Below, in pieces: positions 3,241-58,750 of a DNA stretch of 64,000 nucleotides (the first letter of the stretch is position 1; the number at the start of each line of letters is the position of its first letter). A model generated the notes under the pieces. It worked only from the letters and a program-made list of their open reading frames with translations, was not told where the DNA came from and ran no database searches. Origin of the DNA: Anthoceros angustus (taxonomy: Eukaryota > Plantae > Anthocerotophyta); contig MU008158.1 in NCBI GenBank assembly GCA_010909165.1, positions 3,738,809 to 3,802,808 on the forward strand, given 5' to 3'. Both the position numbers and the translations under genes were made by a program.

Positions 3241-5397
3241 TGGTATCAGAGCTCCAGCCTTCCCCATTTTTCGACATCGTCTTGGCTCCGCGTGCGTGGT
3301 CTGCATCGATCCCGCGAGATGGAGCTCGGACGAACCGACTGCAACGGGAGCCAACGATCCTAAGGACCACGCGATGCCTCGGCGCTGCACTCCGGTGGCT
3401 TTCGTGCCAGCAAGCAACGCGACGCCTCCGAGATCAGCAATCTGCAGGAAGTGCAGAGATGGCATAGCTCGAGCATCGTTCTTCGAAAGTCTCAGAAACC
3501 AAGGAGCCCAGCAATACCATGTAAGAACCGGCCTGCCCTCGCGCTCTCCACCACACTCCAACACAGTGGCGACACCAGCAAGACGCAACAACCTCCACCT
3601 TGGATTCCACCAAGCATTTTTCCAAGAGGACGAAGCAACCACCACAATCGCTAATTACTGTCCACTTCACCCACAACTCCGTAGCATAAAATCCCAAGTT
3701 GAGGCCTTGCATTTGTCGCTAAGCAGGCTCTCCTTGAGTAGCAACCGATGTTTGTAGCTTAGAGACCCTCCTTCATAGCATGCTCGCCTTCGATCCTCTC
3801 CGCACTGCACCTGCAGCAATAAAACGCGTTAGAGCAGCCATGTCTAATCCTACCGTAATCAACACCACTAAGATATATTTTCGTGATAGAGATCGCTTCA
3901 ATGGAAGCGATTTTGACATATGGGAGATGCAGTCACCGCACTCAAGAACATGATCTAATGTCAATAACCGGCACACACCTATACCTTCACCACCACAAAT
4001 CCGACTGCACGACTTGATTGCACTGGTCAAGAAGAATTGTAGAGCACGTAGCATCGATATCAACCATAGACAAGAGCATGCTCCAAAGATACCCAAGGTC
4101 AAAAGACCGCTCACGATATCTGGAAAACCTTCAAAGACATGTTCCAAGCGCAGAGCTCAATGTCACTGATCAACGCTACAAGACAATTCTACTCATTGAG
4201 GATGGAAGACACCGAGCGTCGAGTAGCACATAAACATCTTACGGTCCTTACGGGCCAAGCTCGCCTCAAGCGGACGAGCATTCTGAGAACTCCAAGCCCG
4301 TTTTATGTACCAGTAAAGCATTCATTCTTCGATCGCGTTCCACTTTATGGTATCGAGCTCCAGCCTTCCCATTTTTCGACATCGTCTTGGCTCGCGTGCG
4401 TGGTCGCATCGATCCGCGAGATGGAGCTCGGACGAACCGACTGCAACGGGAGCCAACGATCCTAAGGACCACGCGATGCCTCGGCGCACTCGGTGGCTTT
4501 CGTGCGAAGCAACGCGACGCCTCGAGATCGAACTGCAGAAGTGCGAGATGGCATAGCTCGAGCATCGTTCTTGAAAGTCTCGAAACCAAGGAGCCCGGCA
4601 ATACCATGTAAGAACCGCCTCGCGCTCTCCACCACACTCCAACACGGTGGCGACACCAAGAAGACGCAACAACCTCCACCTTGGATTCCACCAAGCATTT
4701 TTCCAAGAGGACGAAGCAACCACCACAATCGCTAATTCATCCACTTCACCCACAACTCCGTAGCATAAAATCCCAAGTTGAGGCCTTGCATTTGTCGCTA
4801 AGCAGGCTCTCCTTGAGTAGCAACCGATGTTTGTAGCTTAGAGACCCTCCTTCATAGCATGCTCGCCTTCGATCCTCTCCGCACTGCACCTGCAGCAATA
4901 AAACGCGTTAGAGCAGCCATGTCTAATCCTACCGTAATCAACACCACTAAGATATATTTTCGTGATAGAGATCGCTTCAATGGAAGCGATTTTGACATAT
5001 GGGAGATGCGAGTCACCGCACTCCCAGAAGAACATGATCTAATGTCAATAACTGACGGCACCACACCTATACCTTCAGCCACCACAAATCCGACCGGTAC
5101 CCCTGACTTGATTGCAGCCTGGTCGAAGAAGAATTGTAGAGCACGTAGCATACTGATATCAACCATAGACAAGAGCATGCTCCAGCATACCCAAGGTCAA
5201 AAGACCGCTCACGATATCTGGAAAACCTTCAAAGACATGTTCCAAGCGCAGAGCTCAATGTCACTGATCAACGCTACAAGACAATTCTACTCATTGAGGA
5301 TGGAAGACACCGAGAGCGTCGAGTAGCACATAAACATCTTACGGTCCTTACGGGCCAAGCTCGCCTCAAGCGGGACGAGCATTACAGAACTCCAAGC
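3186..5397 (+). repeat. ~1.1-kb tandem duplication of LTR end/PBS/leader/gag start (probable assembly artefact)
   Basis: 3186-4297 is repeated at 4294-5397 with an AAGC junction. Copy 1 is rich in small deletions at its end and copy 2 at its start. Confidence 0.9.
3241..3252 (+). other. Primer-binding site, tRNA-iMet
   Basis: TGGTATCAGAGC, the canonical plant copia PBS. Confidence 0.95.
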
Positions 5398-8300
5398 AGC
5401 TGTTGCATTACTAACCTCTTTGCCTGCATCTTACAGGACGTTCGTCAGTTCACAAAACTCCGTGTTGAGGCAAGTAATCCAGTCAACCACAGTAGGAGCC
5501 ACACTAGCCTACACTCTTGCTGAAGTCGTAGGAGCACTCATGGAGGAAGAGTCCAGCCGTGGCAGCAATCCTCGGTCCAACACTGGACCCAATCAAGCAC
5601 TCTTCACGTCCCGTGGACGAGGCGGGAGAAGAGGCGGAGGACGCGGTGGTTTCTTATCCAGGAGAGGCCCCAACTCTGAAGGCCAATGTGCACACAACCA
5701 AGGAAACTATCAGTCTTCCTCAAGCAATCGACCCTTTGAGCGGCGGACATCGAAGGGATCCTGCAACTGGTGCAGAATACCAGGACACTACGAGAGCGAG
5801 TGTAGAAAAAAGATGGCAGGCGAGCCCAGGAGGGAGGCTACCAGAAATGAGTCTCACATGACGATGTCATCGAAGATTCCAGCAGCCAACTCAATCCTTG
5901 CAGTCTGCCTTACTCTTACAAGGACAGACACATGCCGCTGGTTCCTAGACTCCGGAGCCACAACTCACATCTGCAGTTGTAAGGACATGTTTACCTCCTA
6001 TCACAGTGTCCTGCAAGACCAGCATGTTCTCCTAGGAGATGACAACGCACTCCCCGTCGAGGGATCTGGAGAAGTCCAGCTTCGGTTGTCAACTGGAGAG
6101 GTCCTCACCATCAATGGCGTACTACACGTCCCTCCCATGACCAAGGACCTGCTCTCAGTCCGCAAACTCGCCACTGAACACGATCTGGTCATTACCTTCC
6201 AAGGTAACCACTGCACCATCAGTCACTCGAAAGACCCTCACCAGACAGCCCTTGCACATGGCTTACCTTTCAACGATCTTTACCTCCTCAATATTCAGTC
6301 CTCATCCTCCCTCCTCATTGATAGCACCCCTCCTAGTCCAGGAAATGAGTTGCTTCTTTGGCATTGTAGGGCAGGACGTACACATGAACCCGAGATATCT
6401 CAACATGCTAGCAAACCCCCGTATGTACCGAGACCCAGTCAAAATTAGGGTACATAAGGACTTCTTCTTTGAAATTTGCCAATACACCAAGTTGCATCAG
6501 TCACCCTTCAAGGACCCATCACGTACCCGCGCCCGTCCTCTTCTGGAGACAGTTCATTCGGATATATGTGGCCCCATGAGCACCGCATCCTTCGGTGGTC
6601 ACTCTTACTTCATCACCTTCGTAGATGAGTGGAGCAGATATTGCCACATTTACTTCTTACGACACAAGGACGAAGCCCTCACATGCTTCCAAGAATTCAT
6701 CCTCACAGCTGAGCGCCAAACAGGATTTCAGGTCACATCCCTGCGAACTGACAACGGGGGTGAGTATACAAGCAATGCCTTTCGGCTTCACAATCCAAGG
6801 TATTTCAAGACAATCGCCCACCCTCCCAATCCTTTTTCTGAACGCCTTAATCGTTCCTTGCTGGAAATTTCACGTTCTTTGCTCAAGCTAGCTGGCCTCT
6901 CTAAAGGCTATTGGGCAAAAGCTGTCTCTACCTCTAACTACTTGAATAATAGACTCCCCACAAAAGAATTGCCCAACACTACTCCTTTTGAGAGATGGAG
7001 CGGGACCAAGCCTAGAGTCTCTCATCTCCGCATTTTCGGGAGTCCAGCCTTTGCCCACATAGCAGATGAAACTCGCAAGAAGTGGGACGACAAAGGACGC
7101 AAGCTGCTTTTCATCGGATATTCCGATCAGGTCAAAGCCAATAAACCCTTCGACCCAGCTTCCCAAGAGGTAATTTTTTCTCGTAGCATCCATTTCAATG
7201 AAACCCACCTTCTTCACACATACCTCCACGTCTCTCTCGCAGCTAATCCCCTTCTTGTGCCTAGCATCCAAGGTTATCCATCCCTTGCTGAGTCCCCTCT
7301 TGATCTTGAGGGGGCCACAGATTATGACACTGACAACCAGGTATCAAATTCTCTCCAAGCTCCAGATGCAACTCAGCAATACCTATCACCTATTTCTCAA
7401 TAGCCAGTGCAGCCCATTCCCCCTCAGGTACTCTACCCAGAACCTCTAGTCTAGATGATGTCTAAGACATCATCCTTCGAAGACAGGATTTGTTTACATC
7501 ATTCATGAGGTAAACAAATTAGACGTAGTTCCAGAGGTACCCGCAGCAATTGAGGCACCCCCTGCACTGAGGCGCTCCACACGTCACCGGCCACCGAGCC
7601 ATGAGTGGAGACACCCACCTCATGTCCCATGAGACTCCTTTGCTTGCCCAACTCCAGCTCCTCTAGAGGTACCTGCCAATATTCAACCTCACACAGATCA
7701 GCTTGGGCATGCCCTTCACCAGGCAGCTGTCCAGTCCGAGTACGACTCACTCATATCCAACAAGACATAGAAGCTGACTGACCTACCCATTGGGAGGAAG
7801 CCGATCTCATGCAAGTGGACATTTAGAAGGAAATTTAATCCTAATGGAAGTGTGGCACGGTTCAATGCCTGATTAGTTGTTCGGGGCTTCACCCAGGTGC
7901 CTGGCTTTGATTATGAGGAAAATCGGCTTTTCAGCCCAGTTGTAAAATCAACCGCCATAAGAATTCTATTAGCATTCGCAGCACAGCATCACCTGCAAAT
8001 ACATCAAGTCGACGTTAAGACAGCATTCCTCTATGGCACTCTTCATGAAGACATATACATGTCACAACCACCAGGATTCGTGAAAGATCCCAGGAAAGTG
8101 TACAAGCTCCTCAAGTCCATATACGGTTTGAAGCAATCAGCACAAGTGTGGAATGAAACTGTCGACCTCTATCTGAAGAAGTGTGGTTTTACCCCACTCA
8201 CCTCAGACACAACCGTGTACATTCTCAAGGATAAAACCAGGCTCATCATTGTCACCTTGTATGTCGACGACAACTTCATTTACGGTAATGATCTGTCCTC

Positions 8301-9282
8301 CATTCAGTATGCAAAGGACCTCCTTTCCAAAGAGTACGAAGTGGTGGACATGGGACCCCTTTGCTTTGCCCTTGGTGTGTAGTTTGAGCATAACCCTGTA
8401 GATCACTCATACTTCATACATCAAGAGCATTACGTGGATCAACTCTTGGAGAGATTTAACTTGAAGGATGCAAAACCTGTGTCGACTCCCATTGCCATAG
8501 GAGAGAAAGTTTCCGCAGAAGACTGCCCAACATCACCTGAAGAAATCAAGGAGATGCAACAAGTACCTTACAATGGAGCAGTCAGCAGCCTCTTGTATCT
8601 TTCAATAAGGACAAGACCCGACATAGTCCAGGCCGTGAACATCGCCTCTAGATACCTGTCCAATCCTGGACGAGCCCATTGGACCTGCGTGAAGCGAGTG
8701 TTCCGTTACTTGAAGGGGACCAAGTCCTTGGGACTCGCATACAAAGTTGACCCCACAAGCATACTCAAGCTAACATCTTACTCAGACGGAGACTGGGCAG
8801 GAGACCCCGATGCAAGGAAGTCCACAGCAGCATATTGCATGATGATCAACCAGTCATCTCTATTCTGGAGCTGTAAGAAGATGCAAACAATTTGCTTGTC
8901 GAGCACGGAAGCGGAGTATGCTGCCACGTCACTAGCAGCCAAGGAGATATTGTGGATCAGACAATTCCTGCGAGACATTGACGAGGATCAGTTTGAACCA
9001 ACCAAGCTGCTATGTGATAATCAATCAGCGATTGCCATGACTCACAACCCAATTCTTCATGGAAGGACGAAGCACGTGGAAAGTCAGCATCATTTCATTC
9101 GGCAGGTAGTGGCAAACAAGCAAGTTCTGCTGCAATATGTGAACACAACGGACAACATCTCCGACCTCCTCACCAAAGGTCTTCCTAACCCTCTGCACGA
9201 GAAGCACGTCGCCGTCATCGGACTCACAAGTAAGGAGACTCACTTGGGAGGAAGACACCAAGCTTCCCCAACTTCAGCTTGA
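4859..9282 (+). pseudogene. copia gag-pol polyprotein, disrupted by stops and frameshifts
   Basis: gag DRFNGSDFDIWEMRV; CCHC knuckle CNWCRIPGHYESEC; protease WFLDSGATTHI; integrase VHSDICGP/FVDEWSRY/LRTDNGGEY; RT QVDVKTAFLYG, LYVDD; RNase H YSDGDWAGD/STEAEY/CDNQSAI. Stops at 5324-5326 and 8380-8382, frameshift near 6380. Confidence 0.95.
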
Positions 9283-9799: not shown

Positions 9800-12700
9800 A
9801 GCACAGAACTGTAGAGAGAAGAGGGAATTTGTTATGGAGCGATGTTGTTGCTAGAGCGGGAAATGCGCCTTGATTGTCTCAACTGGAGACCCTCGGGCAT
9901 TCTAAGCCCTCGCTAATTGCTGAGTTGGCTGAGAGCGAAGACTATCTTGTTGCCACCGCTGAGATTGTCCAGACATCTGGGCTATCGACTGGTTCGCAGA
10001 CATGGGAACCAGAGACCTTCATAGCTGCTGCGCTTTCACAAGTGAGTGATGCTGTTGTGGAGAGGCCCCATATATTTGCAGTGGCTACTGTACTGCACCT
10101 GAACCCCCACCCAAGTGGTCTCCAAGCAATTGTCGATTGCCTGCGCCACTTGGAGGTGGCGTGCGTGCAAATGAACCAAGATAAGTTGGTTGCATTGATG
10201 TGCCATCCATTCCCCTCGCACCGACGGTATTTCCCATTCCAACAGTTGCACTACCACTATTACTAGCTATCCCATTCATAGCCCTCACTCCTATAGTACC
10301 AGACATGGAGGCATGTTGTCTGTGCAGCATTTGCGCATGCTGATGTTGCTGTTGTTGGTGATGATCTTGCTGCTGCTGCTGCTGTAAAACCTGGAATTGC
10401 TGCTTTTGTGCAGTTTGTCCAACTAAGGATCTACTCAACTGCTGTGGATGGTGGGGCTGTCCAGCCGTCTGGGCTGCCAACGGATTTGCAGACATGGGAA
10501 CTGGAGACCTTCGTAGCTGCTGCGCTTGCACTAGTGAGTGATGCTTTTGTGGAGAGGTCCCATATACCTGCAGTGGCTGCTGTACTGCAACTGAACCCCC
10601 ATCCAAGTGGTCTCCAAGCAATTGTCGGTTGCCTACGCCACTTGGAGGTGGCATACGTGCAAATGGACCAAGATAAGTTGGCTGCATTGATGTGCCATCC
10701 ATGCCCCTCACACCGATGATATTTCCCGTTCCAACAGTTGCACTATCAGTAATACTAGCCATCCCATTCATAGCCCTCACTCCTATAGCACCAGACATGG
10801 AGGCATGTTGTCTGTGCAGCATTTGCGCATGCTGATGTTGCTGTTGTTGGTGATGATCTTGCTGCTGCTGCTGCTGTAAAACCTGGAATTGCTGCTTTTG
10901 TGCAGTTTGTCCAACTAAGGATCTACTCAACTGCTGTGGATGGTGGGGCTGTCCAGCCGTCTGGGCTGCCAACGGATTTGCAGACATGGGAACTGGAGAC
11001 CTTCGTAGCTGCTGCGCTTGCACTAGTGAGTGATGCTTTTGTGGAGAGGTCCCATATACCTGCAGTGGCTGCTGTACTGCAACTGAACCCCCATCCAAGT
11101 GGTCTCCAAGCAATTGTCGGTTGCCTACGCCACTTGGAGGTGGCATACGTGCAAATGGACCAAGATAAGTTGGCTGCATTGATGTGCCATCCATGCCCCT
11201 CACACCGATGATATTTCCCGTTCCAACAGTTGCACTATCAGTAATACTAGCCATCCCATTCATAGCCCTCACTCCTATAGCACCAGACATGGAGGCATGT
11301 TGTCTGTGCAGCATTTGCGCATGCTGATGTTGCTGTTGTTGGTGATGATCTTGCTGCTGCTGCTGCTGTAAAACCAGGAATTGCTGCTTTTGAGCAGTTT
11401 GTCCAACTAAGGATCTACTCAACTGCTGTGGATGGTAGGGCTGTCCAGCTGTCTGGGCTGCCAACGGATTTGCAGACATGGGAACTGGAGACCTTTCTAG
11501 CTGCTGCGCTTGCACTAGTGAGTGATGCTGTTGTGGAGAGGTCGCATATACCTGCAGTGGCTGCTGTACTGCAACTGAACCCCCACCCAAGTGATCTCCA
11601 AGCAATTGTCGGTTGCCTGCGCCACTTGGAGGTGGCGTACGTGCAAATGAACCAAGATAAGATGGCTGCATTGATGTGCCATCCATGCCCTTCAGACCGA
11701 CGATATTTCCCATTCCAGCAGGTACACTACCACTAATACCAACCATCCCATTCACAATTCGCATTCCTATAGCACCAGAATTGGAGGCATGTTGTCTGTG
11801 CAGCATTTGCGCCTGCTGATGTTGCTGTTGCTGGTGATGATCTTGCTGTTGCGGCTGCTGTAAAAACTGGAATTGCTGCATTTGAGCAGTCTGTCCATCT
11901 AAGGAGCTTTTCAGCTGCTGTGGATGATGGGGCTGTCCATCCATCTGGGCTGCCAACGGGTTTGCAGACCTGGGGACTGGAGACCTTCGTAGCTGCTGCA
12001 CTTGCACTAGTGAGTGATGCTGTTGTCGAGAGGTCTCATGTAACTGCAGTGGCTGTTGTATTGCAACTGAACCTAAGTGGTCTGCAAGAAATTGTCGGTC
12101 GCCACTGCCACCTGGAGGTGGCATGCATGCAAATGCGCCAGGAGAGGATGGCTGCATTGTGCCACCCTTTCCAACCTGCCCTAGTGTCGGTCTAGGAGAA
12201 CCAACATGCCACCCAAAACTCCCCACAGATGTTGCACGATCTGGCCGTTGTGCTGCGACTTCATCCCCACCCAAGTGGTCTCCAAGAAATTGTTGGTCGC
12301 CGACGCCACCTGAAGGTGGCATGCATGCAAATGAGCCAGGAGAAGATGGCTGCATTGTGCCACCCATTTCAGCCAGCTGTAGTGGCCATCTAGGAGAACC
12401 AATTTGCGACAAATAACTCCCCATAACTGCTGCATCATCTGGCATTGGACATGCATTAGATGCTGAAGTTTGTGGCGTTGCGTAGATTTCATCCATGACA
12501 AGATCGTGTCCATCTTCCATCACTTGCATTTCATCCTCGCCCCATTCCTGTCCATCTTTTGCAGTTTGTGGCGTTGCATGTCCATCTTCCATCACCTGCA
12601 TTCCATCCTCGCCCCATTCATCTTCACCTTTTGCAGTTTGTGGCGTTCCGTATATTTCATCCTCGACCAGGTCGTGAAAATCTTCTCCACGCAAGTGGTC

Positions 12701-15700
12701 TCCAAGCAATTGTCGGTTGCCAACACCACCTCGAGGTGACATGCACGCACATGAGCACGCACATGAGCCAAGAGATGATGGCTGCATTGTGCCACCCATT
12801 CCAACCAGCTCCAGTGTCGATCTAGGAGAACAAATGTACGACAAATAATAAAACCCCAAAACTGTTTCATCTTGCATCGAACCTACATTAGATGCAGCAG
12901 TTTGTGGCATTGAGTCTAACATTTCATCCTTCACCAGATCGTATCCATCTTTCGTAACCTGCATTTCATCCTCAACCAGGTTGTGTACATCTTCAATACT
13001 CTGGGAACACAAGGCAGCAAGTAGGCGGGGCAATTCCTGAATCTCATCCTCGCCGGATTCCTCACCACCTCTTGCATCCCGCATCTCATCCTTGACCAAT
13101 TCGTATCCATCTTTTACAACCTGCAAATAGAAGGTAACAATTATGTAGCGCTATTCAATTATTCCCATGTTAACGTTACACAGAATCACGCAACACTATC
13201 CAACAGGTTCTTAGCTTAATCTACCTGGTAACTGTAGTGAGTGGCAATCAGATCTGCCTCACGTGGTGAAAATACACCAAGATTTACTTGCTTCTTATAC
13301 ACCTACAAATTATGCAGCACGAGTTCATATACACAAAAGTCAAACACATGAAGAAGAAGGAGAAGTTTATTTAAGTCCATTAAGGACAGATTTCCATCAT
13401 GGAACTTGGTACTTAGCAACTTGTACATGGGTTTTCTTATAATGCACCCCCACCACCAATCTAATGTCAGTATGAGTTCACCAAATGCAACAATCACACC
13501 AAATGCAACAATCACAGGTAGACAAATGTCCCAATATGAAGACAAAGAAACATAAAAACATTGAATAATCATGCACATACATAAGTAGTCAAATGACTAT
13601 AGTGGGTGCTAAAGAGAAACCTGGTCCTCATAAAATTGGATGGACATCTCTACCGCAAGATCTTTGCTTTGTCCACTCATAAGTAACTTTATTTGAGAGT
13701 AATGGAAATATGGAGAATGACCTGTATGAATCACTGCCATGGATGTTAGCCAAATCCAAATCCAAACCAAAAGACCAATATGAACAGTGCAATCATGTCA
13801 AAGGCAAAACCAATCGTTGAAGTTTGAACATTTACATGAAATAGGTTCCATCCGTAGGAACACCATCAAACGGATCTTTCTTGAACTTGCTGAGCCACAA
13901 GTTAAACATGTGGTCATTCCCTGGGATCCAGGTATTTCATGAGGTGCATCCACCAAAGCAAGCATCATTGCATCCCAAGATGGTATAGCATAGTTGGTTG
14001 GAAACATCTCCTCCATCTTTTCCTTCTTGATATGTAGATTGTGGCTGGAGGAATCACAATGATTGCATTTGCAAAGTTATTAAAACAAGTTATATAAAAA
14101 AATTGAGTTTGACTATTTGCAAGAATTGTTGACTAACAAACAACTAAAACTGCATCACCATCCAATTAAGATTTTTACATTAGGTATCAAAAATGATTTT
14201 CTAGCAACCTGAAACAGGTCAAACAAAGTAACAATACACCATTCTATCTCATTTCTACCTTATCTTCAACTTTTGAAGCTTGTTCATTTTGGCTCGCTTG
14301 AAGTCAAAATGAACAAGCTTCATATAACTTGAAAAACCAACTATAACACTAGATCTAAACAAACAAAACACAAATCAGTAGGTAAGGAAACACACCTTTT
14401 AATAGCCGACAGCAAGGCTAGAATAGAAACATCACTCCCTGTGCACTGATGCTGCAGGAGAGGGACTTTCGGGATGCTTTGGTCAGCCCGCTGGGGATGC
14501 GTCCCTTGATTCGACACCGGGTGGAACTCATACTCCTCATTCTTCTGTGACTCCTCGGAATTCTTAATTTCGCCTTTTTGGTGAGCCTTTTCCTTCACAG
14601 GTTCACGCTTTATCCGTTTTGGTTCAGACCTTACCCCCGAAGCTTCCCTGTTCGCTCTTTTACCCAGCAGAGATAAACTACGAGCTAGTCCGGGAGTGGG
14701 TTCATGGTCGGAATTGCCTGTTGTCATAGGTATAGAACTGGTGCTCAAACGTGGTGAGCTAGACAGTTGCCTGAGTTGTGTGGGAGGTACTATTGCACCA
14801 TGCATTCCCTCTGGAACAGGCATCTCCGTTTCATGAAAGGTCCTGTGCCCCGAATCTCCAGCTCGATCTTGGTCAGGAGCTAGAACCCATAGAGCAGATT
14901 GTGCGAAACCTAGGCCTTCGTTTTCAGGTCTTCCTTCACATGTGCCCGCAGCAGGTTCAGTGACATCCCATGATCCAGAACACACATTTTCTGAGCTCTG
15001 ATTCTCCTGCGGAAGAGTAGGACTTAACCCTCTGGCTGTCACCATGTCTGAAAGTTTTACAAACCTGGATCCGATATAATCAGCAGACTGCTTGGCAATT
15101 TTTCTGGAGGACGCTCGTAGACGTCTACTTGTGAGTGCACCAAAATGAGTACTGTACCGCCCAGTTGCTCGGCAGCCAGAGTTGCAGGTTTCCACTGACG
15201 TAGTGCCCAGCTACAAGATTTGTTAGCACGCTCTCCATTAAATGCATCATTTTGCAAGACATCAACCATGAAGACACAAAGATCTCAAACCTTACCAGGA
15301 AGATTATGTGAGCCTTTGCTGCTACAGCAGGAGAAGGATGAAGATAAAGTCAAGGTCGCACTGGCTTCAATATCCTTGATTCCAGTTCCTGCCAAGCGGA
15401 GCCGTTTATGAACACGTCCCACACAAGATGAGAAGATCCTGTGGGTAATACATTCTTTGGAATCGATTCCACATTAACAGTAAAAGTAGAAGATGTAGAA
15501 GCAACCAAAACATCCGAGGAAGACCAATTTCCACCTGCCATTTTTGTAACGTCTTTCACAAGAATCTCCATTCCTGGCCGAAGAACAACCACCTCCAGTG
15601 TGGGAACCCATCCTCTTGTCCGTTGGACCGCGTGCTATCCGAGTGCTCACAATCCCTGTAGTCGAGTATCTGTACCCAAGAACAAACGCACGATCTTTTC

Positions 15701-26999: not shown

Positions 27000-28945
27000 A
27001 TGGTGGACACCTTCCATGTAATGTTTGAATGGCCACTTGCCGCTCGTTCACCTCCCCCTTCTCTGGTCGGTCTCTGGATTTCATTGCCACGCACTTAACA
27101 AGCAAAAATCCGGCATTCTCACTGCAACCATTCCCCGCCAACGAGTCTCCATGACAACGAGATCCATGACTCCTCAGCTTTGCCACTCTCCCTTGTCCGC
27201 CAACGGAAACTGCCAAAGTCGTCAGGCCGGTCTCGTGATGAGTTTGCAACCGCGATTTGGCAGAGATGAGTAACTTGCAGCAGTAGCACGCCGAAGATGC
27301 GAACAATTGCTTTGACAGTCAGCTGATAGATGACGAGGTTCTCTACATCGATTTCGCCGAGAGTGCCTGTCCATATCCTATCCTGAGGCGAATCCTCACG
27401 CTTGCTCGTTCTCGATGGCAACCCGTGAACCACCATTCTCAATTCTCCATGAATACAGTGTTCCGAAGCCCTCCGACTCCTGCCTAGACCCGCCCTGAAA
27501 GACTTTGTGTTCCGAACCGGGTCGGAACATCGGGTCGGTCAAACATTGAGTGGAAACACTGGAGGAACTGCCACTGCTGTAACAACAATAGGGGAAGAAA
27601 GGAGAGCCAGTGACCGATATCTCAATCAACCTGCTTTGTCCCACAAGTATATGCTTGACCACCTCTCGCATTGAGGGCCTCAAACTCGGTTCACCTCATC
27701 AGGATCCCAGCAAATTTTGCAAGCTGCAGCTCACCTCAGTAAGAAATTTCCTCTCCCCTTGTTTGAAATTGTCAGCAATCCGCATCACAGCCACCGGATC
27801 CCCCCTCCCCTAACAACGAGTCCTGGCTGAAATTAGCCGTCGCCCTTTGAAGCTCCCCGTAGCAAAACAGGCGGGGAGCACCATTCGAAATTTTGGTCCT
27901 GATCACCGTGCCTCGCTGCGCATGGATGCTAAGACAAAGGGATCTTCCCCATTTCCGGTACAAAATCCACCCAAGCAAAGCAGCAGAGAGGGCAACAACG
28001 ACAATCCCCGCCGGGACTGCCGACTTCACTATCCGATTCCTCCCGGCACCGGGTCCTGCTTCCGGCTCCGGTACCCCACGCCCGTTCTTAGGTCCGCTTG
28101 CAATTCCTGTCGTGTTGAGCTCCCAGTAGAACAGCTCGTTGATTTCCACCGCACTCCCTGTACAGTGCTGGCGGAGAAGCGACATACGAGTAGGAGTTCA
28201 CTCGATCTGTCAAGTTCACAGTGGTCTTGATCAACAGTTCGGCACTCATGATCAGCTTCAGGCTGCTGGACTGTCCAGCATAGCTTGGCACCGTATCTGC
28301 GATGCTCAACATCCTCACTTCTACAAGCAGGGAAGCGGGGATATCGTGGTCCAGCCACACACCGAACTTCCCGTCCCAGAATCTGTCAAGCCTAGAGGAC
28401 AAGTCACCGGCCTCGGAGGGCCGGACATTGTTCATCACCACAGCCACGTACGGCGTGTCATAGTTGTCCCCGGCGCTCTGGTATGTGTGGAACAGCAACG
28501 CGACGATTCTGCAGTCCTTGCCTCCAGAAGGTACCGCTCCTGTGTTGTAGCTCATGGTCTTGAGGAGCCCGATGCCGGCACTAGTGGACCTGTCAGGAAC
28601 CTGCAGGTCGGGAGCCAGGAGGAATGCCATCCCGTCTTCTCCAGAGTCCTGTGGGACACACTGTGAAGCCTGAGAACGAAGAAGGATTGCAGGGAGGCAG
28701 CCGAGCCGGACTCTGGATCCCACAGATGCAGTGGCTCTTACCGCATGAACCCTCACCGCCATGCCCTGGTTTTGCGTATTGTAACCTGCGAAGGGAAGTA
28801 GCTGGCTGTTACTCGGAGTGCATGTCAAGGTCAGGTTCTGCCCGGCCTCACCGGTTGTGCCTATGCGGGACCCGCATCCTCATCCGCATCCGAAGAGAAC
28901 CACAAACAAGCACAACAACAATCCGGGATACACCGCTGACGACAT
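27000..28945 (-). pseudogene. L-type (legume) lectin receptor-like kinase pseudogene with internally deleted kinase and a possible second kinase remnant
   Basis: Signal-like MSSAVYPGLLLCLFVVLF followed by a stop; lectin motifs DGMAFLLAP, VALLFHTY, VWLDHD; frameshift ~28180; TM; PRLFCYGELQRATANFSQDSLLGEGG jumps almost directly to RPSMREVV. Confidence 0.8.
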
Positions 28946-42040: not shown

Positions 42041-42920
42041 AATCCGAGGCTTCCAGACCAGCAAGCTGCTACGGGACAAGAATCAACAAAGCATCATCGA
42101 AGCACTGATGAAACCAGTGCAACAACCAGCCGCAGCAGCAAGAGCACATTCTGTCCGTTTGATGTGATGTCCACGTGGAGCATCTCCTTTCTTCAGCACC
42201 GGCTACGGCGTCCCTGACTCTCGCATGAAGACATTTGCCACCTCCAATATCCATCACCACCAACCAAGTTAGCCAAGATAGGGTTGGTGTCCTCAACAAG
42301 AAGTGGGCCAGGGCTTAATGGAACAAATGCCAAGCAAGGCCTCTCTGCCAATCGGCTCTTGGCTGCCTTGCAAACAGCGGAAATCACGGTCCCAGATGCA
42401 GACACAGGCTGCACGGAATGTGTACTTCCATCTTGGCTACAGATACTTTAGTACAAGAAGACCCTGGAAGGTCAGCCGTAGAGCTTCTTCGTTTTACTAA
42501 GAGCATCTTCGTCAAGTTGACTGCACCAGCATTCTAAGTCCTCAATCAAGAACACATCCTACATGAAAGAGCAGCCAAAATATGACATTCAGCAGATGAG
42601 GCAGCTGCAGAAATTACATCACACAAAACTTTGACGAGCAGTAGTCCTGACTGTGGAAGCCCATAAAGGGCAGATGAATTGAGGTCCTGGCATTTGCCAG
42701 GACTTGAAAGGACGCCATGCTGCTAGCACCACGTATTTGTGGTGCTGCACATCACAAGACAGCAACCTCCACAGAGACGTGGCTGCCATTCTAACAAACC
42801 ACCCATCCTCAGGAGGAGGCTGCAACCCTTGCGTATGATAACCCCAAATCACACATTTCTAGAATGGCAGAATATTTGCTTGCCAAACAAATCTCTGAGA
42901 CTGTATGCTGTACAAAGAGC

Positions 42921-44645
42921 CTAGCTATCTGACGACCTGACTGAATCTTTGGGAAGTTGCAAGCTCACAATATCCTCACGGGGGAGGCCGCCCCCAAACA
43001 ACTCTACTTCAGTTTGGTCAGCGCCGGGATCCTCCTCCGCTCTCCTAGCATCGCTCTCATCCACCGGAAGCAGGTAAGTCACCTCCCTGTCTGTCCGGAA
43101 TGCCAGATACCCGATTCCACCCAAGTACACAAGAATTCCAGAGAAGCCACTAATCCCAATCAAAGCCTTCCAGGCAACATGGATTCCGAGACGAATCAGC
43201 CAGCCGACGAAAGCAGTGGACAGGTAGTAGATGTTCACCGTCATGATCGCAAACCCAATCATCCAGGTGGTGACCGCAATAACCCTAGAGTTCTTGTGAG
43301 GCCCCATCTTGACTGCACTGCTGGTGAACTTGAGCAGAGGCAGCAGGGCAAAGGGCAGCTCGAAGGACAAAATCATGGAGGATATGATGATGAGCCTTCC
43401 AGCACCCTTAGACCCCGAGATGATAGCCACAATCAAACTGGGCACGATGGCCACACACCTGGTGAACAAATTCCGGAGCCAGGGTTTGATCCGCAAGTTG
43501 AGAAACCCCTGCATCACAAACTGCCCCGCATACGTCCCAGTGATGGTAGAGCTCTGCCCCGACGCCAGCAGGGCAATAGCGAACAGAGTAGAGCTCCACC
43601 TCCCCAACACATTCCTGAGCAAAAAAGAAGCCCTGTTGAGATCCAGGTCGTCGCAGCGGCTCCGGTTCTCCTCCGACAAGCCCTGGCTCCCGCACACAGC
43701 CCCGGACACGGAGATGACGGACACGTTAATCAAGAAGGCGAGAAACAGCGCAAATGCGCTCTCCAGCATGTAGTACCGGCATCCGTCCTTGATCCCCCGG
43801 AGGGAGCGGGGGATCTTCCTGGACAGCACCAACGCGGAGTGGAGGAAGAGGTTGTGCGGCATGACCATGGCCCCCAGCAGCGAGATGGCGAGCCCCGTGG
43901 CCCCGCTGCCCTGCAGCCGGGGCACGAACATGCCCTTCAACACCTCCCCGGGGTCCGGCTTCGCGTATCCCAGCTCCACGAAGAAGCAGCCCGCCATGGT
44001 GAAGACCAGCAAAGCGATGAGGATCTCCAGCTTCCGCACCCCGTACTGCTGCAGCGCGAGCAGGATGAGCGTGCTGAGCCCCGTGAGCAGCACCCCCGCC
44101 CACACCGGGATACTGAAGAGCATGTTGAGCCCGTACGCCGTGCCGATCACCTCAGGGATGTCGGAAGCCACGATCGCCACCTCCGCCACCACCCACAGAG
44201 CGTAGTTCACCCGCCTCGGGTACTCGGCCCGGCAATGCTCCGCCAGATGCTTCCCCGTCACCACCCCGAGGTTGGCCGCCAGCATCTGGATCACCAGCGC
44301 GGAGCAGGACGCCACCAGGATCACCCACAGCAACTCGTACTGGTACTGAGCTCCCGACTGCAGATCGCTCTCGAAATTCCCCGGGTCGATGTAGGCGATG
44401 GCCACCAGGAAGCCCGGCCCCAGGTACGCCAGGAACTGCTTCCATCCCCGCTTCTCCGGCACGTGCACCAGGCTCTTGCCCTCCTGCTCCTCATCCCCCG
44501 CCACTGGCCCTCCCGTGCTGCTGCTCCTCTGCTGCTGCTGCTGCTGCTGGTTGTGCGGATGGAGAGGGTTTGTGCCGGCGAAATGCGGCGGCGAGGCGCT
44601 GCCGCTGCTGCCGCCGCCGCCGCTGCCGCCGCCAAATGGGGCCAT
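42921..44645 (-). CDS. NRAMP: NRAMP family divalent metal transporter (AtNRAMP1/OsNRAMP5-type clade), intronless, 574 aa
   Basis: [54 protein letters not shown]-terminal [12 protein letters not shown]. Single uninterrupted ORF; start chosen as the first in-frame ATG downstream of the TATA box. Confidence 0.96.
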
Positions 44646-44764
44646 GATCGATTCTCGATCTGACCGGTCTGCTCTGCCTCTCCTTCTTGGGCTGCTTCTG
44701 GCTTGAGCGAAGATCGAGGGATGAAGAGAATCACCCGCCTCGGGGCCGAGCAAGCGTGACGCCC

Positions 44765-44779
44765 TCAAGCGGTCCGCAT
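44765..44779 (-). promoter_or_regulatory. uORF2 (MRTA*) in predicted NRAMP 5' UTR
   Basis: ATG CGG ACC GCT TGA between the TATA box and the main ATG. Confidence 0.5.
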
Positions 44780-44826
44780 CTCGGGATCGCGCAAACCGCC
44801 TGGGCGCCTGGCTGCCGGGGAAAGGC

Positions 44827-44856
44827 TCACATCGGCATGGCCATGGGCATGGGCAT
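44827..44856 (-). promoter_or_regulatory. uORF1 MPMPMAMPM* (five in-frame AUGs ending AUG-UGA) in predicted NRAMP 5' UTR
   Basis: ATG CCC ATG CCC ATG GCC ATG CCG ATG TGA, about 70 nt downstream of TATATAA. Confidence 0.65.
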
Positions 44857-44925
44857 CGGCGATCCGAGGCTGGCCGGTGCTGCCTGCGAATGTGCGAATG
44901 CCCCCTGCAGATAAGGCCTGCTCTC

Positions 44926-45128
44926 TTATATAGGGTAGGGCGAAACTGACAAACTGGTTTGGGCAGCATGCGCCCGGCCCAAGGTGGTGCCCGCCCGCGC
45001 TTGCCAGTAACCTTCTCACCTGCTACCACTGGTCGACATGCACGACTGCAGTCCGCGGTCCGCGGCCCGCGGCCCACGGGACGCAGGGCAAGGGCAAACG
45101 AATCCAACTGTACACTGTACATATGTAC
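44926..45128 (-). promoter_or_regulatory. NRAMP core promoter: TATA box and triple GTAC cluster
   Basis: cccTATATAAg at 44926-44932; GTAC at 45110, 45117 and 45125 (three within 19 bp). Confidence 0.6.
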
Positions 45129-46497
45129 TTTGGACGCTTGCACTGACGGCCTCTCAACCTGAGTTGTATGGAATTGCATTAAAGCGCCCCCAGATTTATG
45201 ATAATCAGCACATTTATCTTGTTCCATACGTAGACGTTATTAGGTAGGTATCGGCATTTGTGAATTTGCAATGCGATACCCGCAAAAACATAATGTGCAT
45301 TGCGATGCACGCACAGGTTTTGTTGTTGTTGCTGGCAAGCATGCGAGTGCGTTGGACATCTTCAGCGATTTCACAGCTGAGAGGAAATCGGATCGGGCTG
45401 CCACTGCTGGCTGAGTTCCAGGTGGTGCACGCTGCAGACTGGACATTATGGACACCTGGACCGTACATTATTGCAATAGAAAGAGCAACTGCATCCTTCC
45501 AATTTCCTGTGCGCCATGCTCGCGACTGCACACTTAGGGTTACCTCCTGGCCTTGAAAAGCTCTCTACACCAGGTCCTGAGCAAGCTCAAGTTTGGAGCA
45601 TGGAAATCGAAGGTGCAGCTCGATCTTGCTGTTCCGAGTGCAGATGAGAGCTAATGAGAAGCGGCAGCGGCAGCTGCAGGAGCGCCATGGAGGCTATCCT
45701 GGAAGCTGCAGCAGCCTGCTACCCGCTCTGATTCCACCAGAGCGAACGCCACTGAAACCAGGCTGTGAGCCTGACCGGCTGCCTCCACACGGTCGCCAGT
45801 CCAACTTCCAACTGCAGTCGGCCGCCCGAATCGACAGCGCACGGATGCCTCTTCAGAAATTCGATCACGGAAGTGGCGGTTCCTCGGAGGACAACTGTGC
45901 GTTGTTTTTATTTTTTTTAATTTAATATTTTGAAAATATATCGGGGACAGGCAGGGTATGAACTATGAAGCCCTTGAATCGTGTGGCGAATCGATTCGCC
46001 GGGTGCTACACTGGTGAGATAAATCGTACAGTAGTGTGGACGAGGACGCCACACGCTCACAGTGACGCCCCACGCTCCCTGCGCAAGCAGGCTCCTCCCA
46101 TCGGCGGCATTAGCCTGGCACATCATCTCTCTCAGTCCAGGAACGATTCTAAAATGTTATTAAATCTGCACACCTAATTACGAAGTACTTAGCAGCACAC
46201 ATGGAGACCAGTGTGCACTGCACTGCCCCAGCACAGATGGAACCAGAGCGCAGAAAATGCGAAAATTGGAATCGGAGTCGAAAATTTTATTGATCATTTT
46301 TGTGCTCTAAAAAAGGGGTGCTAGGCTAGCCCTACAGTTATAAATGGCAAGTGACAGGTTCACCCGTTGATCGGGTCAACTGTCATGTGACCCTGACTGG
46401 ATACAAAGTTCCCGTCTGTGAGATAAGGCTTCACGGTGAAGAAATCTCCCCTTCGCTCAGGGATCGGGTTTCTCCATCCGCGCTTCAGGATCGTCAT

Positions 46498-53199: not shown

Positions 53200-56100
53200 T
53201 ATAGTGGCGCTACCCCGACTTCGGCCCCTAGCTCGAGGAAGTGGGTGCGCTTGTGCAGGAGTGGCACCTGGACATCTTCCAAGCAATATGGACCTACGAT
53301 GTGCTCGGGTCCGAGAATGCTGGAAGATCTCGGCGATGGAAAGTGACAGGCCGTCGTCAAAAGCTTGAGGGAGGACCCGAGGCGATGGACAGTGGAGGTC
53401 CTTCGCGCAGTATACAACCGGCCGACGGAGGAAGTTGGGGGAGTAGTGCCGGAGCCTCTGAAGGTAAAGGGAAGATTGGAGGCAGCCAAGGCGGCTCTGT
53501 TGAAGCGCGGGACCCAGAGGTCCTCCAACGGGTGGCTGATGTCGGACCTGTTGGACCGGCGGGTGAGGGCAGTGGCAAAAATCATTGTCCACTGGAACAT
53601 GCTCACCAAGGTGCACATAAGGATAACTGTCTAGTGTTCCTACATGCTCTCCTGAGGGGCAAGAGGGCCCTCCTGGGGACGGATCGCCGGATAGAGCCTT
53701 AAGGTCCCAAGATCGAGTGGCCTCCCCTCGTGTCGCCCCCTTCATCTTGCATGTCTAGGGACACCACAACCTCTTAAAGGAGGAGGAGGAACGAGCACTC
53801 CGGCGGGGGCTGGCCACCTTACCGGAGGGAGAGTGGGATGGAGGGGCGCAGGACCCGGACAGCCAACCGGTTGAGGGGACCAAGACGCGGCGTGTGCAGG
53901 AGGAGGAAGATTGGGAGTACCAATGGCTCCGGTGGTGACAAGGTCCGTCCGAACCCCCCAGTTGAGCCCTGATGGACAAGGACGGAAGGGCAATAGAAGA
54001 AGGGTGGGTGCCCACCCACCACTCCCATGGATACACGGCCCCGCCCCCATGACAACAGAGTGGGCGGAGGCGACTGTAAGGAGGGCGGAGAGAGACGCTG
54101 CTCAAGGCACTGGAGGTCACTGGCAGCAGCCTCATCCGAAGCCAGTTCTCTCCCCTACGAGGAGAGGGAAGAGAGCTAGCTCCCGGACCCCTTCACCCCC
54201 ACTGGACCCCAAGCGACAAAGAGCGAAGAAGGAATTGGCTGCGAAACGAGCCAAGGAGGTGGATGGACCTGCTCCGGACGAATAGGACCTAAGGGTCCTA
54301 GTTGGGTCCGGAGTACCCAACCCGGACCACTCACACAGTCTGTTCGGTCCAACGGACCGGAATGTTCGCGCCGGTGGGGTTTATGGGAGCATGTTACAGA
54401 TGGATAATCGCGTAACCCCGATCACCATTAGTCGACGTAATTACTAGTGTTTAATAATTACGAACGGGTGTGCCTCTTCGGAAGAGACACCCAATGACAC
54501 TATTTAAGACACACTTTGTATACACCTTCTAGGCAGATTAACACGAAATATCTTTCTGAGCATAGCGTCATGATCATGCTAGATTAGATGCAATCCTACT
54601 GCTAGGATTTTCACATGGTATCAGAGCTTTGAACAATCTTGGATGAAAAATGAAGTCAGGCAGGTCCCTCATCCGGGTCCTGATACAGTCCAAGGGTGCT
54701 TAAACCGGGAGTTTCTAGGGAGCCTAGCTACTCCCCTCCTGCTTTCGCAGCTTGTTTAGTTTTTGCAAGCCCGCAGATATCAACAGTCAGGAGTTCAAAT
54801 GAACTTAAAAAACAACAACGGGAGAGGCGCCTCTCCTTTCGCGACTGTAACGAAACTTCCCAGCGGCATGCGATCGATGGCGAGGCGAAGATTCGGCACC
54901 AGCTTCCCGGCCCTCGAGTGCATGCCTGGGCTGGCTACGTGCCTTCCGCCCAATTTGTGGCTGCCACTCATCGTCGCTCGAGGCGAAAGAGACAAGTTGA
55001 CGAGCAGCAGCAATTTCAAGCGGAATTGCGACCACTCACCCTAGTTCCCTCTTCCGAGGCGCGGCTACACCGCAGCCCGGGGTTGGACAAGCTGATCCGG
55101 AGAGGGATCGCCGCGCGCCTGCCGTCATAATCGGCGACAATCGAATTCTGCATCGAATTTCCACAATTTTCCCCCTTTTTTTTCACGGCACGCACCTCCT
55201 CAGTCGATTTTGCAAAAGTTTTGGCTGAGCAAGATTGTTCAAGCTCAATTTTGGACAAAGAAACTATGATTTCCTCTCGATATGTAGCCCGGGCGCCCAA
55301 GGATCACTCACTACGGCCTTCGAATTCTAATTCACCAAGAGGAGCGGAGGCAACCCCCGGCCGCATGGAGGCTGCAGCCTCCCCATACGAGCGCACGCAG
55401 CGCAACCGCCGCCTGTGCGGATCCCGGAACAAGCGCGCGCACGGCGCGCGATCACGGGAGGGGTGTCGCCCGCGAAGCAGGGTGCCCGTGGCGGCGCACC
55501 GCTCAACGGAACGGCGTGCCCATTCCTCCAACGGGTGTCACCCCCGTTACTTCTCCAACGGGCCTAATATCTTTTTATCCTTGACTGTTTTTTCCCTTGG
55601 GTACTGGTGTAAAAACAGGAGGAAGGAAGAGAAAAAGGAAGGGAGAACTCTCACATGAGAGATTAAAAGCTAGCAAGAGAGGGATACCCATTTTCTCCAG
55701 ATCTCCCGACTCTTTCGGATATTGACTGCTCTTGATTTTATGACCACGACGGGGGCTTGTGGACCAGCTTATACAGCACTTCAACTCGCTTTCTATTAAC
55801 CCACCTGCTACCATGGCCAGCACCTCCTCCTTCGCCCTTACAGGCTCGAATCCCATCTTCACCGACCACATTAGAGAGAAAGACCGATTCAACGGCCAAC
55901 ACTACCCTGTGTGGCGCGTTCGGATGAAGTCGATCCTTATTGGTCGAGGCGTTTGGAAGCTTATCGACGGCACTCTTCCAAAGCCCAATCACGCAGCAGT
56001 TCCACAGCCTTCTGCTGCAGACATTGAGAAATGGGAGTACTTGAACGGGATAGCTGTGGCACTCTTGATCAGCGGCCTGGATTCGAGTCTTGTGCCTAGT

Positions 56101-58750
56101 GTCGAATTTCTCTCAGATGCATCCTCCATCTGGGACCAGTTGTCTAAAACATACAATGTTAACAATGTTCTAACCTTATGCGATTGTCTGGCGAATTCAA
56201 CTCCTTAAGGATGAAGGAGACCTGACGCGTACGCCCACACCTCGAAGTTCGTGACACAGGGCAGCCTCGCCTCCTTGGCTCAACCATGTCGGAGACCGAT
56301 GCCGCTGCACAGCTGCTAATGAGCTTACCACCGTCTTATCAAAATTTCGTGACCAGCCTGATGTTGGTATCAACTCATGGTAAGTCAGGTACACCCTCCA
56401 CCCTTACAGTGGAGGACATTATCGGCGCTCTGTATCAGCAGGAGCAGAGCCACCTTAGCTCTGCAGGAGGATCCAAGCCCGAGGCAGACAAGGCGTTTTC
56501 CACTCGCTTCAAGCCCGGGAAGAACTTGAAGGGCAAGGCGAACTTCACCCCTAAAGGTGAATCAACCTCTACCCCTCCTAGCCGAGCTGGAAACTGCAAT
56601 TGGTGCGGAGCTGCCGGCCATTGGGCACGAGAGTGCCGCAAGAAAGAGGCCGGAGAGTTGAAGGGTGACCAGACAAAAGGCATTGCGATTAAAGGAACGC
56701 CAATGGAGGCGAACCGTAAAGATACTTACGGTTTGCCTCAACACCCAGTTGCATCAGGATGCGGGGTGGTATCTGGACAGTGGAGCCACCGCCCACATAT
56801 GCAACGATCGTACTCTATTCACCAAGTTGGATACTCGTCCTCTCAGGGAAAGGGTGTTACTCGGTGATGAATAGAGTAGATCCAGCCTGCCAATCATGGG
56901 ACAAGGCACTTGTGAATTTCCCCTAGAGGACAGTTCGGTGCTTACCTTGGAGCCTGTGCTCCTCATCCCACAGATGGGCAAGAACCTGGTCTCCATGACT
57001 CAGCTGCTGAAGCAAGGCGATCTTAAGATGCTTGCTTCAAGGGGGTCATGCTACTTTTTCGGGACCACAAATCCTGACTTGTGCCTCTCTTGCCGTGCCT
57101 CAAGGCGGCTGTCACGAGCTCATTAGCCTCGTGAGGAGCGCACCAAAGAGGAGCGTCGCGCTCCATGGGAGATGGACTCCACCACTGGTCAGGTCACGTC
57201 CAGCTTAAGAGGAAGTGTTACGGAATGGATAATCTGCCCATAACCCTGTCGACCAGCTAGTTCCAGAGACCGTAATTATGATTTAATAATCTGACGGGTG
57301 CCTCTTCGGAAGAGACACCCAATGACACTATTTAAGACACACTTTGTATACATCTTCCAGGCAGATTAACACGAACTATCTTTCTGAGCATGGCGTCTTG
57401 ATCATGCTAGATTAGATGCAATTCTACTGCTAGGATTTTCACAGAGCATCGCCGGTCGCGGCCGTGGAGGAGACAAGGCGGGTCTTGGCGGCCGTTGTGG
57501 ATGGCATGTTGTGGGGGGTCTACGGTACCGCAGAGAGGACGCAGGAAGTGGAAGCCACCCGGAGAAGTGTAACTCCGAGGCGGATGAGCGGCCGTAAGGC
57601 GGAATCCACAGCCTGGATCAAGATGAGGCGGCGAAAAAGGCAAGGTCCATCAGATAGGGCTCGGGTGCTTCAACCGTATGAACAGTTGAAGCACGCTCAG
57701 GAGGGTCAGGCACGAACAGAGGCCTTGAGCCATCAAAAGGAGGAAGCGAGGGTGGCAGCAGATGTTGCGTGACAGCAGACGGAGGATGCTCGCGACTCGG
57801 TAGAGGCCACATGAAGGGAGGAGAGCAAGGCTCTGGAGGCTCAACTAAAGGGAGCCAAGAAAAGCGGCCAACGCCAAGAGATCGAGACTACTAGGCTGCA
57901 GAACTTGGAACCTGAGGAGGCGGCCGAGGCCTAAAGGAGGAGGCAAAGGCAGGGATAAAACGCCAGGCCCATGAAGTAAATGCAAGAGCGGCTGAGGGAG
58001 ACGGGAGATCTCCAGATGCAGCTTCATGAGATGGACGAGGTGCGCAAGGAGCTATAGGGCCAGAAGGAGACCTTGGAGCTATGGCTCTGGGTGGTGGAGG
58101 AGAGAAACGGGATCCTCCAGGGTCTGATTGGGGACAATGAGCGGGAGGTAGAAAGACTCCAACTTTGCCTTAGGGTGGAGGAGAGCCATCGGCGAAGCAA
58201 GGAATTAGATGTCGCGGAGCTTCAGAAGGAGCCGACCGATGCCAACCGCCTAAAAGAACTCCCGGACCGGCTGGAGAGGGAGATGGAAGTCCTGAGCTAG
58301 AGGGTGACGAACCAGCAGCAACAGAGGAACGAAGAGCAGAAGTTGTTGGTCCATCTGCGAAGGGCGGAAGGGGAATCCCCAGTCTTGGCGGGCCAATTGG
58401 CCGCTCTACGGAGCGAACAGGAAACAGAGCGGGCCAACGAGAAGCGACGGCTTCAGGAGCTGGCGGAAGCTTCTATAACGGCTTCCAGAGATGCTGCAAA
58501 GGCCCGGCTAGAGGGCCTGGGGGATGGAACGGCCCAATGGGCGGACGAGCACGCTCGATTACCGGAGAAACTCTGGAGGCGGGAATACCGAGTCCTTAGG
58601 GCCCATCTGGCGGAGGCCATTCAAGCAGTCACCGCGGTGGGGGTCCGCGCAGGGTTCGGACTTGGGGTCCGGACTTGGGGTCCGGACTTGGGGTCCGGAC
58701 TTGGGGGTCCGGATACCGGAGGCGGGTTCGGACTTGGGGTTCCAAACCCC
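53200..58750 (+). mobile_element. Degenerate TE-associated accessory ORF (globular region plus long coiled coil), interrupted by the nested LTR element
   Basis: GC-rich, intronless + strand frame with many stops on both sides of the insertion (REDPRRWTVEVLRAVYN...; E/R/A-rich coiled coil at 57460-58600). Resembles accessory ORFs of large gypsy elements; host termini not found. Confidence 0.45.
54392..57443 (+). mobile_element. Non-autonomous copia-type LTR element with gag+protease only (TR-GAG-like), 3052 bp
   Basis: LTRs 54392-54615 and 57216-57443 (TG...CA); TSD GAGCA (54387-91, 57444-48); PBS TGGTATCAGAGC at 54616; PPT AAGAGGAAG at 57207-15; gag DRFNGQHYPVWRVRM, CNWCGAAGHWAREC; protease WYLDSGATAHI; no IN, RT or RH. 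Confidence 0.95.

Follow-up and report, generated by a model that had tools for sequence, protein, structure and literature searches.

Probable repeat origin of a methionine-rich upstream open reading frame in the leader of an intronless NRAMP gene of Anthoceros angustus

Why does the leader of a plant NRAMP transporter gene contain a run of methionine codons that looks like a copper-binding motif and ends with an AUG directly before a stop codon? The gene in question lies in the 64,000-nucleotide stretch of Anthoceros angustus DNA analysed here (the window). Between its TATATAA box and its start codon are two upstream open reading frames (uORFs). The first, uORF1 (44827..44856, minus strand), reads ATG CCC ATG CCC ATG GCC ATG CCG ATG TGA and thus specifies MPMPMAMPM-stop from five in-frame AUGs and a UGA; the second, uORF2 (44765..44779, minus strand), specifies MRTA-stop. 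The initial annotation of this locus saw here a possible metal-responsive switch, acting through translation or through splicing. Direct reading confirms the letters and coordinates that it gave for both uORFs, the TATA box, a GTGAGC splice donor and a CAG acceptor. We conclude, with a probability of roughly 0.6, that uORF1 is a young, lineage-specific uORF born from a repeat, with a mild and probably constitutive damping effect on NRAMP, no role for its peptide and no spliced extension of the transporter.

The gene downstream of the leader is an intronless coding sequence of 574 amino acids on the minus strand (42921..44645), running from an ATG at 44645 to a stop at 42921. The start codon has a strong context (aucAUGG), with A at −3 and G at +4. 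The product matches the Nramp domain over its full length (Pfam PF01566, positions 1-357 of 357, E 9.6e-120), and a word-based protein search gave identities of 66-73% to land-plant NRAMP1/6-type proteins from ferns, liverworts, gymnosperms and angiosperms, 73% being the ceiling among the best 120 matches listed. Carriers of the NRAMP1/6 type transport Mn, Fe and Cd. Exact look-ups of the full and extended NRAMP products and of two contig-shaped partial ones returned no match, and a metagenome scan found no relative of the product. The orthologous loci used for comparison were genomic sequences from Calypogeia fissa (L001), Marchantia polymorpha and M. paleacea (L002, L005), together with five plant transcriptome contigs that represent three distinct proteins (L003/L004, L006/L007 and L008). 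All of these orthologues share with the window NRAMP the N-terminus MAP, which marks 44645 as the start.

The liverwort orthologues (L001, L002, L005) span 4.3-4.6 kb for 565-567 residues, whereas the gene in the window is intronless. The gene may be a copy of the retrogene kind; on its 3′ side no remnant of poly(A) was seen. Its N-terminal coding region carries (GGC)n and (CAG)n repeats, detected by TRF as arrays at 44597-44633 and 44516-44549, and the tract that crosses them (44513-44678) is 9 nt longer in one relative (X3) and 3 nt longer in another (X14), both multiples of three.

Is the repeat transcribed at all? Contigs from four sequencing runs match the window, one of them (X1, from the same species) with 0 differences and the other three, from other organisms, at ~90-95%. 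All four behave as transcript assemblies, with a total contig size of 29-60 Mb per run. The contigs of the relatives are ~0.7-2.4 kb long and start and stop at gene borders, and the stretch 44948-46000 is without coverage in any of the four runs. From contig size, gene-border ends and this bare upstream stretch we read the runs as RNA, their automatic label being only a guess ('RNA?'). One X1 contig covers 44180-44896 with 0 differences at a depth of 119, and another covers the rest of the coding sequence (to 44148) and the 3′ side at a depth of 87. The 5′ end of the former, 44896, lies 31-36 nt downstream of the TATATAA box (44926..44932, minus strand). The contigs of X3 and X14 end at 44879 (with three further letters, at ~44882) and at 44877, so that all three 5′ ends cluster within ~20 nt, a short way downstream of the TATA box.

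These ends define a 5′ leader of at least 251 nt, with a GC content of 65% (44646..44896, minus strand). A transcription start downstream of 44827 had been named beforehand as the outcome that would speak against the switch; the contig ends lie upstream of that position. Since the contigs extend upstream of 44856, in X1 and in both relatives, both uORFs are within the main mRNA, as had been proposed; this main transcript is unspliced and also carries the repeat. The analysis gives firm anchors for the start of transcription, which we predict at 44896-44905, for the start codon and for the lack of introns in this NRAMP gene. Compared with the relatives, the leader shows ~10% mismatches and 10 gap letters over ~201 nt, against ~6% in the coding sequence; the leader evolves faster than the coding sequence. 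It contains no match to Rfam, whose sole match is a chance-level snoRNA inside the coding sequence, and no unusual fold (z = −1.16). The possibility that promoter and leader belong to a dispersed repeat was rejected, as they are single copy in the window.

Some further features of the transcript and its surroundings may be mentioned here. In X1 the contigs are broken at a variant bubble (44149-44179), a one-letter difference at a depth of ~7 against ~137 (~5%) that is probably an allele or a sequencing variant. The X1 contig with the 3′ part of the gene continues 746 nt beyond 42000, to ~41254, whereas the contigs of the relatives end at 42432-42503; the run-on may represent either an extended 3′ UTR or a convergent transcript that overlaps. 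Upstream of the start codon the NRAMP frame is free of stops for 197 codons (44646-45227, minus strand), across the transcription start and the TATA box, as happens in 0.13% of dinucleotide shuffles (~1% by a frame-assignment estimate). A coding role for this open frame was rejected, because its GC3 is 0.55, compared with 0.81 in the coding sequence, and its codon log-odds are negative.

Within the leader, the first AUG of uORF1 is at least 40 nt from the 5′ end, 47 nt separate the stop of uORF1 from uORF2, and ~119-120 nt separate the stop of uORF2 from the main AUG. The −3 bases of the five uORF1 AUGs are, in order, C, C, C, G and C, and the AUG of uORF2 also has G at −3. Each of the two frames has an AUG and an in-frame stop inside the transcribed leader, upstream of the main start, as any uORF must. 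The number of ATGs in the leader is not unusual (six, where shuffles average 4.1, P = 0.15). For so GC-rich a leader an AUG-stop is rare, being found in 2% of shuffles (P = 0.02), a feature that was picked after the fact. In the literature, the best-ranked matches naming both NRAMP and uORF contained no uORF of a plant NRAMP gene.

The repeat nature of uORF1 is evident from the DNA itself. The uORF consists of an (ATGCCC)-like microsatellite that has a period of 6, 5.2 copies and 84% matches (TRF, 44830..44860). Of the six period-6 arrays in the window, it alone, on either strand, has four or more ATGs at 6-nt spacing, and this it owes to being a tandem repeat. Such an array is far from what base substitution would give by chance, yet it is just what slippage of an ATGCCC unit produces. 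The repeat also accounts for the metal-binding look of its translations. The initial annotation had pointed out that the same letters read CPCPWPCRC in the NRAMP frame and DAHAHGHAD in the third. Both readings are present, but within the transcript only the Met frame has an AUG; all three frames resemble metal-binding peptides since the repeat holds ATG, TGC and CAT as overlapping triplets. The locus illustrates that a multi-AUG uORF can arise from a microsatellite in a leader, and that a repeat, once translated, can look like a metal-binding motif whichever frame is read. Another hexamer repeat of the window, (CCGCAT) x3.5 at 28872-28892, reads ATGCGG on the opposite strand, so that ATG-bearing period-6 repeats recur here.

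Bin depths from the relatives bear on the stability of the array. In both X3 and X14 exactly 6 positions are missing within 44814-44879, the covered part of the 134-nt bin that holds the array, and 3 more are missing within 44680-44813, one of them listed at 44783. Each also has 1 inserted letter, and the totals agree with the 10 gaps and a net loss of 8 letters. The loss of 6 nt in or beside the hexamer array, as deduced from depths and not from letters, fits a change of one repeat unit.

How might such a repeat act? In the reading that we favour, a hexanucleotide (ATGCCC)n-like microsatellite would have grown in the 5′ leader of an intronless NRAMP1/6-type gene and so given rise to uORF1. 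Its five in-frame AUGs, each in a weak or moderate context, would jointly capture many scanning 40S subunits. With at most nine codons in uORF1 and four in uORF2, termination should be quick and scanning should resume, and the ~119-120 nt that follow uORF2 would then allow reinitiation at the main AUG with its strong context. The expected net effect is a mild, probably constitutive damping of NRAMP translation, possibly sensitive to the general capacity for reinitiation, without a spliced N-terminal extension and with a Met-rich peptide that would not itself have any specific role. That ribosomes are captured and reinitiate is inferred here only from start contexts and spacing, under established scanning rules. 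In plants, nonsense-mediated decay is not an expected consequence of uORFs of this length. Potential uORFs are present in 30-70% of plant genes, most of them without peptide conservation (PMC11062462), and like these ordinary uORFs the present pair is AUG-initiated, only a few codons long, placed ahead of a main AUG in strong context and not conserved in its peptide. What distinguishes uORF1 is its origin from a hexanucleotide repeat, with five in-frame AUGs and a Met-Pro peptide.

Comparison with orthologous leaders argues against a selected peptide. The ATG repeat, the Met-rich uORF or any similar peptide is absent from the leaders of the orthologues, five of them independent, from liverworts and plant transcriptomes, although presence of the motif in orthologous leaders had been put forward as a check; in the close relatives the stretch holding the repeat is, by bin depths, 6 nt shorter. 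Conserved-peptide uORFs (CPuORFs) are defined by conservation of the peptide across species, and it is for them that sensing by short uORF peptides is known (PMC11062462); the same leader set shows no such conservation among taxa. What uORF1 shares with CPuORFs such as those of SAMDC and bZIP11 is the idea of a nascent uORF peptide that senses a small molecule in the ribosome; it differs in that its peptide is absent from orthologue leaders and looks length-variable. Known cases of peptide sensing rest on conserved motifs, which are absent here.

Could the element nevertheless be a nutrient or metal switch? Under this proposal either the nascent MxM peptide, while in the exit tunnel, would sense a metal such as Cu(I), or the AUG-UGA would stall ribosomes in the manner of Arabidopsis NIP5;1 and destabilise the mRNA. 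The MxM repeat does resemble the Cu(I)-binding Mets motifs of Ctr/COPT proteins, with the same clustered MxM/MxxM spacing in MPMPMAMPM. Those motifs, however, sit in the extracellular N-termini of mature copper importers, whereas here there is a separate 9-codon ORF before an NRAMP-type carrier and not an N-terminal segment of a copper transporter. A copper sensor would also have no clear logic on a carrier of the Mn/Fe/Cd type, and the peptide is simply a translated microsatellite. Metal sensing by this peptide is speculation, prompted only by the MxM look of a translated ATGCCC repeat. Copper-sensing uORF peptides do exist in bacteria (PMC9426467; PMC9973294), and Bordetella CruR/Bp2923 offers a parallel in that a nascent upstream peptide senses a metal and controls a downstream transporter gene (PMC9426467); a nascent exported protein is the subject of PMC9973294. 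The bacterial leaders encode far longer proteins and depend on a CXXC motif, a RAPP arrest motif and Rho-dependent termination, none of which applies here. A triple GTAC cluster upstream might also be taken to favour a switch: three GTAC cores fall within 19 nt (45110-45128), at a distance of ~180-200 nt from the TATA box on its upstream side. The window has no other cluster of this sort, but with random placement the probability of finding some such cluster is 0.29 per window. A link between SPL7 and Nramp5 is mentioned in a rice review (PMC12748393).

The AUG-stop also speaks for a switch, both for its rarity in shuffled leaders and for its recurrence in liverworts, and we count these two points against the repeat-born reading. 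As in NIP5;1, the gene encodes a nutrient transporter and its leader has an AUG directly before a stop codon (here ATGTGA, 44832-44827; 44827..44832, minus strand). In NIP5;1 the AUGUAA stands alone, the P site being occupied by the initiator Met-tRNA and the A site by eRF1 (PMC11915504), and decay of the mRNA also needs a conserved element that lies 12-19 nt upstream (PMC12666852). In the window the AUG-UGA is not a stand-alone minimal ORF but the last codon and stop of a 9-codon uORF, preceded by four in-frame AUGs. Only ribosomes that have scanned past these four meet it as a true minimal ORF; those that have started at one of them do not reach the NIP5;1 state, with the initiator tRNA beside the stop. 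Boron-dependent stalling and decay are features of NIP5;1, with which the window leader was compared in its AUG-stop sequence; the NRAMP gene is not known to have a link to boron. Among the orthologues, the Calypogeia leader has a uORF, MHFFAVVLHRM-stop, that ends in ATGTAG at −201 (L001, ~1800), and both Marchantia leaders have M(S/P)YM-stop, kept between the two species and ending in ATGTAA at −48 (L002, L005, ~1953); the three transcriptome leaders have no AUG-stop. By shuffling, the probability of at least one AUG-stop is 0.02 for the window, 0.105 for Calypogeia and ~0.16 for Marchantia, and that of finding one in at least two of the four other independent leaders is ~0.07, the window itself being left out because it was chosen for the feature, a choice on which this value remains conditioned. 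As stop codons, positions and peptides all differ, the liverwort AUG-stops appear to be a weak lead, although they may leave some room for a selected feature. We regard the switch as improbable, and would be at least as sceptical of the more specific proposal that the AUG run ending in an AUG-stop is a selected sensor, one of a recurrent set of Met-stop uORFs in non-vascular NRAMP1/6-type leaders (window, Calypogeia, Marchantia) that would couple stalling at termination to metal or nutrient status. Were a switch nevertheless to operate, a metal-responsive uORF would be on record for the first time for a plant NRAMP, and AUG-stop control would no longer be confined to boron.

The same observations could instead mean that the repeat does nothing at all, its AUGs being bypassed by leaky scanning or offset by reinitiation, with no measurable effect on NRAMP. 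C at −3 in four of the five uORF1 AUGs is consistent with such a neutral element, as are the apparent length variation of the array between species, the faster change of the leader and the lack of conservation in orthologues. Complete bypass is, however, unlikely for five consecutive in-frame AUGs and one more upstream AUG, and the fourth AUG of uORF1 and that of uORF2 have G at −3. We therefore consider neutrality a possible but unlikely outcome, and prefer the mild damping set out above for the repeat-born uORF.

There remains the splice, by which uORF1 had been proposed to join the transporter. Removal of a 133-nt leader intron in some transcripts would fuse MPMPMAMP to NRAMP and give an N-terminally extended protein. 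The candidate intron (44698..44830, minus strand) has the expected motifs between its GT...AG borders: a GTGAGC donor at 44830, a TTCAT branch-like site at −28, a tract with 74% pyrimidines and a CAG ending at 44698. A frame test by script shows that the removal would indeed join uORF1 to the NRAMP frame. This part of the proposal stands, but it carries no weight, since 8 of the 16 AG acceptors that follow the only GT donor of uORF1 are in frame; in-frame fusion is uninformative because the NRAMP frame is stop-free through the whole leader. The donor motif GTGAG occurs twice more in the unspliced coding sequence, the candidate intron has a GC content of 67%, the rest of the gene is intronless, and the conserved MAP terminus places the start at 44645. 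Contigs of three species (X1, X3 and X14) are all colinear here, with no joint across 44830-44698, although contigs can drop rare isoforms. The X1 contigs, which are broken at a bubble of ~5% depth, run unbroken through 44830 and 44698, suggesting that a spliced isoform, if there is any, is rare in the X1 sample. The mammalian gene DMT1/SLC11A2 (NRAMP2) has alternative 5′ ends that add an N-terminal extension; these arise from alternative promoters and exons documented by cDNA, whereas here no spliced form is seen. We find a spliced extension very hard to credit.

Finally, two other features of the window may be noted. Large split ORFs that were considered as intron-bearing genes for comparison turned out to be degraded remnants of copia-type retroelements (4859-9282 and 55759-56867), with gag, integrase, RVT_2 and Pol beta-barrel domains. 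A tandem repeat of 492 bp (9966-12159, 4.5 copies, 92% matches) lies inside a minus-strand ORF of 1013 amino acids (10085-13126).
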